A DNA stretch of 63,278 bases, counting the filler, from Olpidium bornovanus S191 (lineage: Eukaryota; Fungi; Olpidiomycota): the NCBI GenBank assembly GCA_017911155.1. It is 30 parts of 30 records of this genome, joined end to end, with 100 filler letters (N's around TTAATTAATTAA, not from the genome) between each part and the next. Parts side by side here need not be neighbours in the genome. Positions count along the whole stretch, not along the records: positions 11,705 to 13,108 come from JAEFCI010010020.1; 29 more parts are not named here. One strand, 5' to 3'. The notes under the pieces are model-generated. The model worked only from the letters and a program-made list of their open reading frames with translations. It made no database searches and had not been told where the DNA came from. The translations under genes were made by a program, and so were the position numbers. Below, in pieces: positions 11,979 to 12,502 of the stretch (its first letter is position 1; each line of letters opens with the position of its first letter).

Positions 11979-12046
11979 CCTTTTGCGATGCCATCCAGAC
12001 TCACCTTGTTGAAATTTTCCCACGTGACCCGACGCCACCAAGGAAT

Positions 12047-12357
12047 TGTTGCGCATCAAAAGTGGGCCGACCGAGGGTCAAACTCGGGACCTTCCCTATC
12101 CCGGAGGGACGCTCTACCAACTGAGCTATCTGCCCTATTCACCAGGTGTCTGGCTCGCCCTGCAAAGCCATTCCAACACCCCCCCCTCGAGCCAGGCACC
12201 TCAGGCACTGCTGTCAACGGGGCTCGGCCACCCGCGCAACCACAATCGAAGAGACGAAGTCACGATTGGGCTCATAACCTGTCGTTTTCGTTTGGGCTAC
12301 GTTGGGTGGTAGTAGTAGTAGTAGTCTGAGAGCGGTAAAAATATTTCGGGCGCAACA
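12047..12357 (-). mobile_element. 311-bp miniature LTR-like (TRIM-like) element with PBS, PPT, non-identical arms and an internal tRNA
   Basis: GGAAT at 12042-12046 and 12358-12362 (5-bp TSD). Termini TGTTGCGC...GCGCAACA. Order on the minus strand: 78-bp arm ending CGACA (12357-12280), PBS GGTTATGAGCCC (12279-12268), about 79 bp internal, PPT GAGGGGGGGG (12188-12179), 132-bp arm starting TGTTG (12178-12047). Confidence 0.85.
12063..12135 (-). tRNA. tRNA-like gene (73-nt cloverleaf, nominal anticodon GGG); probably non-decoding or element-borne
   Basis: GGGCAGA-TA-GCTC-AGTTGGTA-GAGC-G-TCCCT-CCGGGAT-AGGGA-AGGTC-CCGAG-TTTGACC-CTCGG-TCGGCCC-A. D, anticodon and T stems are perfect and the acceptor stem has one mismatch. 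C33 replaces U33 and T56 replaces C56. TTTT follows one nt after position 73. Confidence 0.85.
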
Positions 12358-12502
12358 GGAATGACCGACGGCGAATGCAACAACAGCACCGCAGAAGACA
12401 AAACCGCGCAGTGCGGATGCCGGACGGAAGCATGTGGATTGTGGGAATCGCATCCAGGCCGCGGAATCCTGTTTTCCGCCAGGGGGGTGGCCACCCCTGA
12501 AC

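Follow-up and report, generated by a model that had tools for sequence, protein, structure and literature searches.

Anatomy of the insertion

The window studied here is a stretch of 63,278 nucleotides of Olpidium bornovanus S191 DNA (Fungi; Olpidiomycota), and the element described below lies in the piece at 11705–13108, which comes from record JAEFCI010010020.1. This piece holds an insertion of 311 bp that is bounded by two copies of a 5-bp TSD and ends in short, perfect inverted repeats (Table 1). Read along the minus strand, its parts follow one another as arm B, PBS, non-coding spacer, PPT and arm A, the order expected of an LTR retrotransposon with arm B in the place of the 5' LTR and arm A in the place of the 3' LTR. 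The two arms nevertheless show no likeness beyond shuffled controls (local alignment score 16, shuffle mean 14). Arm A contains a tRNA-like sequence, and arm B carries AAATATTTTTA and a (TAC)5 repeat. A sequence-only reading of this locus had described the TSD, the inverted ends, the PBS, the PPT, the cloverleaf with its TTTT and the unrelated arms, and every one of these features was found at the position it had given.

Contigs from four public runs (X1, X2, X9 and X13; three of them metagenomes, from soil or other sources, and one a coded organism) were aligned to the locus, as were further loci of the O. bornovanus assembly. One of these loci (L006), together with X13 and X9 contigs, confirms where arm A starts; where it ends is confirmed by the copy at another locus (L005, JAEFCI010007190.1) and by the TSD. 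The internal region of the window copy shares ∼90 per cent identity with that of the L005 copy and ∼98 per cent with X1 and X2 contigs. Two G-to-A changes, at 12249 and 12252, are private to the window copy, all other copies in the four runs having G there.

Table 1. Features of the insertion, of its surroundings and of the complete copy at L005 (window positions unless noted).
Feature	Position	Strand	Remarks
Host repeat D, left part	12007–12041	.	X1 and X2 contigs without the insertion
TSD, left copy, GGAAT	12042–12046	.	from sequence
Inverted ends, 8 bp	TGTTGCGC 12047–12054; GCGCAACA 12350–12357		perfect inverted repeats
Arm A, 132 bp, TGTTGG...GCGCAACA	12047–12178	-	3' LTR position; L005 has A at both ends
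T-run TTTT (12058–12061) and 11-bp LTR tail GATGCGCAACA	12047–12061	-	invariant in 3/3 full LTR copies
tRNA-like sequence	12062/3–12135	-	same orientation as element; ARAGORN and Rfam RF00005
PPT GAGGGGGGGG	12179–12188	-	directly upstream of arm A; G-rich at the equivalent L005 position
Internal non-coding spacer, 79 bp	12189–12267	-	between PBS and PPT
PBS GGTTATGAGCCC	12268–12279	-	complementary to tRNA-iMet anticodon stem-loop; primer assignment per PMC10886601
Arm B, 78 bp, TGTTGCGC...ACGACA	12280–12357	-	LTR-like; occupies 5' LTR position
TSD, right copy, GGAAT	12358–12362	.	from sequence
Host repeat D, right part	12363–12502	.	interrupted at 12502/12503, where the next element starts; contig pieces 12362–12491
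Neighbor LTR, 122 bp, TGTTGG...TTTCACA	12503–12624	+	unit in X1, X2 and X9 contigs
Neighbor PBS	12625–12636	+	same as that of the TRIM
Neighbor GC-rich leader	12671–13005	+	tandem repeats, periods 17, 18, 23 and ∼63–85 bp
Neighbor possible gag start, ATG	13053	+	
Complete copy, L005	arm A 1662–1792; internal 1793–1892; arm A 1893–2020 (L005 positions)		perfect 5-bp TSD GTCAG

The empty site

The insertion is real, and both of its ends are fixed to the base by contigs that lack it. The empty site that the sequence-only reading had pointed to is present in one contig each of X1 (583 bp) and X2 (2865 bp), which match 12007–12042 and 12362–12491 at ∼88 per cent identity, skip the 319 bases from 12043 to 12361 and carry three letters of their own (AAG) instead. 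The net difference of 316 bp is that of the 311-bp element and a 5-bp duplication, and the target is a single GAAGT in these contigs as opposed to GGAAT twice in the window. Because the flank is itself a repeat, the empty contigs are to be read as paralogues or relatives, perhaps not as the orthologous site. Beyond 12491 they carry ∼6 extra letters, after which the match to the window resumes (CACCCCTGAAC, 12492–12502) and diverges where the TGTTGG of the next element begins.

The termini agree with other copies as well. Arm A ends at 12047 as the L005 copy does, and in a B-arm contig of X9 the homology stops exactly at 12357. A 5-bp TSD combined with 8-bp inverted ends at such a spacing arises in 2.5 per cent of Markov-shuffled pieces, so that this pattern taken by itself is only suggestive; the empty site and the two agreeing termini show independently that the ends are real. 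The earlier description of the locus as a miniature retroelement inserted by an LTR-type integrase is supported. None of the runs, RNA runs among them, contains this locus itself, the share of its words reaching 0.22 at best.

The canonical form of the family

Outside the window, arm A belongs to an element with two alike ends. In seven contigs, drawn from all four runs, the PBS follows without a gap on the last bases of arm A (...GATGCGCAACA), so that 12279 stands next to 12047. Two contigs of 262 bp each consist of a 233-bp cycle (the 132-bp arm A and a 101-bp internal region) and the assembly overlap, which fits an LTR–internal–LTR arrangement because a de Bruijn assembler yields such cycles from it. 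One contig of X13 runs from flank through arm A into PBS and internal region, with A in the 5' LTR position, and an entire copy of 359 bp, ordered A–PBS–internal–PPT–A, is present at the O. bornovanus locus L005. Arm A is truncated at L006, where the TGTTGG boundary is exact, and an annotated protein (P0001) crosses the same junction of internal region and arm A. From the A–PBS contigs and the complete L005 copy it follows that the A family is an ordinary two-LTR TRIM (terminal-repeat retrotransposon in miniature) of ∼360 bp, with a tRNA-like sequence in each LTR.

These observations do not support the layout that the sequence-only reading had favored, in which a single permuted LTR of 210 bp (A and B fused) formed a one-LTR circle that was opened at a palindrome and integrated. 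L005 has A at both ends, the A–PBS joint recurs as described above, and the fused joint that would place 12047 next to 12357 occurs in none of the four runs, the B contig running instead into unrelated flank.

The A-family repeat is 91–97 per cent identical to three O. bornovanus contigs or proteins, a comparison of repeats and of no single-copy gene. A spurious open reading frame over the element matched three 'hypothetical proteins' of O. bornovanus (GCA_017911155.1), and a protein search with a second frame over the element returned P0002 again and nothing else. The gene models BJ554DRAFT_404, BJ554DRAFT_4230 and BJ554DRAFT_1885 (L005 1657–2078; L006 325–744; P0001) overlie TRIM copies or fragments and are for this reason probably spurious. 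In P0001 the internal–A sequence is followed by a proline (C-run) stretch that resembles a PPT, a hint that LTR and internal region may alternate there in tandem (LTR–internal–LTR–internal). When metagenome contigs were scanned with the PBS junction, four loci (L001–L004) were found that share the PBS alone, without the tRNA-like part, and a scan of viral and genome contigs with A-specific, B-specific and junction strings gave no match.

A tRNA-like sequence in the terminal repeat

ARAGORN folds positions 12062–12135 of arm A into a cloverleaf that it assigns to Pro with anticodon GGG, and the Rfam tRNA model RF00005 matches with 55.5 bits (E = 7e-11). In an Rfam scan at E ≤ 1 tRNA alone matched, and 5S rRNA was not found. 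The A box (TAGCTCAGTTGG) is intact and the TTTT follows the tRNA-like sequence directly; the B box (GAGTTTGACCC) is degenerate, with a T at tRNA position 56 in every copy. A C at position 33 and an A5·G68 mismatch in the acceptor stem are further departures, and with these three defects the cloverleaf looks non-functional as a tRNA. Its D arm is unlike that of a eukaryotic tRNA-Pro.

When the metagenome variants are taken together with the three full LTRs, conservation is greatest around the A box, in the T arm and in the T-run and tail, and the anticodon arm is the most variable part (6/17 columns, with one copy showing a 4-bp deletion). This pattern favors a promoter role, and by analogy with Cassandra and Helenus elements the tRNA-like part is most likely an internal Pol III promoter rather than a tRNA. 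Two observations count against this role: T stands where the conserved C56 is expected, and a Pol III transcript must read through the TTTT of the 5' LTR in order to include the PBS. The promoter role is likewise putative in Helenus (PMC10886601). Whatever its use, TRIMs bearing tRNA-like sequences inflate counts of tRNA genes and yield spurious gene models.

Relationship to known elements

Helenus elements, placed within TRIMp3 by Kojima (2024), are TRIMs whose LTRs include a tRNA-like sequence (PMC10886601). Those of fungi have 5-bp TSDs and a PBS for the anticodon loop of iMet and appear to depend on Copia elements, and their published hosts are all Basidiomycota (Pucciniales, Agaricomycetes); Helenus elements measure 311–1263 bp, and in most of the predicted tRNAs isotype and anticodon do not agree (PMC10886601). 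The A family resembles them in most respects. It is non-coding, with a sense tRNA-like part in the 3' part of each LTR, after which come a T-run and a short tail; its LTRs run from TGTTG to CAACA and its copies have 5-bp TSDs (GGAAT in the window, GTCAG at L005); its internal portion starts with GGTTATGAGCCC and ends in a G-run PPT; its length of ∼360 bp lies within the published range; and the anticodon is mismatched to the rest of the tRNA body. The PBS 12-mer occurs 48 times in the Helenus consensus file and begins the internal portions shown there, and the fungal Helenus LTRs shown in that file are built like arm A, from TGTTG through the tRNA-like part and a T-run to CAACA (PMC10886601).

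Beyond these generic motifs there is no kinship in sequence. The published Helenus consensus file contains none of the strings specific to the A family, and the family is for that reason separate from those already described; its B box reads GTTTGA as opposed to the conserved GGTTC, its host is of the Olpidiomycota instead of the Basidiomycota, and the window copy has one Helenus LTR only, unlike L005 with its two direct-repeat LTRs. On its motifs and layout the element is assigned to a new family of an already published kind, Helenus/TRIMp3, and the Olpidiomycota are probably a new host lineage for it. Such an occurrence would extend the range of the Helenus architecture from the Basidiomycota to an early-diverging zoosporic fungus and bears on whether elements of this kind arose repeatedly or are old.

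The suggestion that the element is a tRNA-promoter analogue of Cassandra was right in kind, since a tRNA-like sequence does lie in the LTR, and fell short in that this kind has already been published as Helenus/TRIMp3. In the Cassandra elements of plants the LTRs of a TRIM likewise carry sequence from a small-RNA gene transcribed by Pol III, although it is 5S rRNA there and tRNA here, in another kingdom and of independent origin. Similarly, tRNA-derived SINEs (SINE2) are short non-autonomous retroelements with a tRNA-like Pol III promoter module. They differ in having this module as a 5' head, together with a LINE-type tail and mobilization by LINEs, and in having no PBS, PPT or LTRs, whereas the present element has its module close to the 3' end of an LTR, possesses a PBS, a PPT and direct terminal repeats, and has a TSD of the fixed 5-bp Copia type.

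Origin of the unlike ends

The PBS, the PPT, the TG...CA ends and the 5-bp TSDs are hallmarks of LTR-retrotransposon machinery supplied in trans. Given the description of the Helenus family, the helper would be a Copia element whose reverse transcriptase and integrase, acting in trans, would copy and insert the gene-less TRIM, leaving TGTTG...CAACA ends and a 5-bp TSD.

Homology between the window copy and L005 extends from the 3' terminus across arm A and the whole interior, PPT, spacer and PBS included, and stops at the ACA before the PBS; arm B takes the place of the 5' LTR. Nor is arm B peculiar to this locus: a contig of X9 (record 26) carries B–PBS–internal sequence (12193–12357) at a different locus with a different flank, ∼80 per cent identical in B. 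When arm B was compared with arm A, with LTR C, with the rest of the piece and with all fetched loci, it scored at most 1 point above shuffled controls, and a protein search with the open reading frame over arm B gave no match. Neither a B–internal–B element nor a PPT–B junction was found in the contigs of the four runs, and the B family that we postulate is accordingly known from one contig and the window.

We consider it somewhat probable (roughly 0.6) that the 311 bp represent a single integrated Helenus-type TRIM with an unrelated 5' arm, that is, a hybrid. Of the explanations set out beforehand, a chimera of two families, which the sequence-only reading had listed as an alternative, fits best. 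Our best guess is that the window copy is a recombinant of two TRIM families. It was most likely made before integration, because the flanks are continuous in the empty-site copies and the TSD is perfect. The partners would have been an A-type TRIM and an element with B LTRs, with a PBS and internal region in common. In standard reverse transcription the outer LTRs come out identical, and this holds for chimeras of co-packaged RNAs as well (PMC6894440; PMC1950507), so that the hybrid needs a non-standard step. Plus-strand strong-stop DNA may have been transferred between molecules, annealing to the PBS complement on the minus strand of the other, or two cDNAs may have recombined homologously within the 101-bp internal region. 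The product could then have been integrated normally, the 8-bp ends of B and A being perfect inverted repeats of each other. Lacking matching R regions, it should be a dead end.

Three other routes to unlike ends were considered and rejected. An ectopic crossover after integration would leave unequal TSDs and a broken flanking repeat, and both are intact; gene conversion after integration has no homology on the outer side to work from; and if arm A had arisen from B when a SINE or tRNA inserted into it, the parts of A outside the tRNA-like sequence (43 and 16 bp) should resemble B, and they do not. There is a parallel with the template-switch or recombinant complexes of Sabot and Schulman (2007), which are also aberrant products of related, co-packaged elements with a single insertion and a normal 5-bp TSD; the outer LTRs are identical there, in contrast to the unrelated outer arms here (PMC1950507). 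A copy flanked by a TSD and ending in two unrelated terminal repeats would be a rare natural record of recombination between families before integration, although as a single case the hybrid is a curiosity and establishes no new principle.

It is also conceivable that the B–PBS–internal–PPT–A arrangement itself propagates with two unlike ends, for example by release at palindromic CA–TG junctions or by being copied end to end. The 8-bp ends form perfect inverted repeats, better than the 5-bp ends of the A family itself; B–PBS–internal sequence of a deleted-TRIM type is present at a second locus in another sample, the X9 record described above; and that contig passes through B into its flank unbroken, as if there were a single B there. 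Yet neither an A–B joint nor a second complete B–internal–A copy occurs in the four runs, A–internal–A is the common form, and standard LTR replication cannot regenerate B–internal–A because B and A have no common R region. We regard propagation in this form as unlikely. Its more specific version is improbable as well: B–PBS–internal–PPT–A might be a second self-propagating form in which a short, TATA-bearing arm starts the transcript and the tRNA-like arm sets its 3' end, or one set free from a composite master copy at its CA–TG palindromes. Were this so, an LTR-type element would be able to do without identical LTRs.

The hybrid could, alternatively, be a product of the assembler, misrouted through the common PBS and internal repeat at a locus that in reality holds an ordinary two-LTR TRIM. 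The assembly is fragmented (contigs of 1–4 kb), the shared internal region is indeed a repeat, and the window's own junctions of flank with A and of B with flank rest on this assembly alone, being bridged by none of the contig pieces listed. On the other hand, an identical 5-bp TSD stands at both junctions and the flanks are contiguous in the empty-site copies, so that a misassembly would require two copies of the flanking repeat to have been hit at precisely one position, by an A-type insertion in one copy and a B-type insertion in the other. This makes it a quite improbable account of the locus.

That the locus is a true tRNA gene of the host beside which retrotransposon debris has collected, as in tRNA-targeted integration, might be supposed from the cloverleaf with its TTTT terminator and the nest of LTR-like pieces around it; the tRNA-like part nonetheless sits inside a repeat unit of fixed boundaries, with a 43-bp leader and a 16-bp tail, that recurs in L005 (twice), in L006 and in four read sets and is absent as a whole from the empty site, and C33, T56 and the acceptor-stem mismatch oppose function, so that we give this account next to no weight. 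A DNA transposon such as a Ginger-like or other MITE, with TIRs of 8 bp and a TSD of 5 bp, would share the TGT...ACA inverted ends and the TSD and is scarcely tenable for an element whose PBS and PPT lie at the exact positions of an LTR element and whose relatives have terminal repeats of ∼130 bp that are direct, not inverted.

Neighboring elements

A second LTR-type element occupies 12503–13108 on the plus strand, head to head with the TRIM (Table 1). It may be a relative or helper of the Copia type, but no coding domain is reached before the end of the piece. No gag-pol partner of the TRIM was recovered from the contigs of the four runs. A contig of X9 (record 25) has the 3' 60 bp of the internal region (12189–12248) joined to unrelated sequence and probably derives from a longer element. 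Within the neighbor, the summed depth of soil-metagenome contigs rises to ∼100–127 at 12833–12879 from 5–20 elsewhere, which is no signal of copy number because this GCC-rich, low-complexity stretch is common to many unrelated contigs.

On the minus strand of L005, 2399–2427 is a further Copia-type PBS region, 90 per cent identical to window 12627–12655 and ∼400 bp from the canonical TRIM. Elements of these types seem to cluster.

On the other side of the insertion, the minus strand at 11818–11994 encodes a 59-aa open reading frame that matches Pfam Pol_BBD at E = 0.039. The sequence-only reading had suggested that the element sits inside an older copia pol remnant, and the match, which falls below the Pfam cut-off, is a weak hint of this; the frame may be a decayed Copia pol remnant. 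Farther out, GGAGGGGTGTTGG at 11788–11800 on the plus strand mirrors the junction of PPT and LTR start in the TRIM (inverted repeat I7) and may be either another LTR start or a chance likeness.
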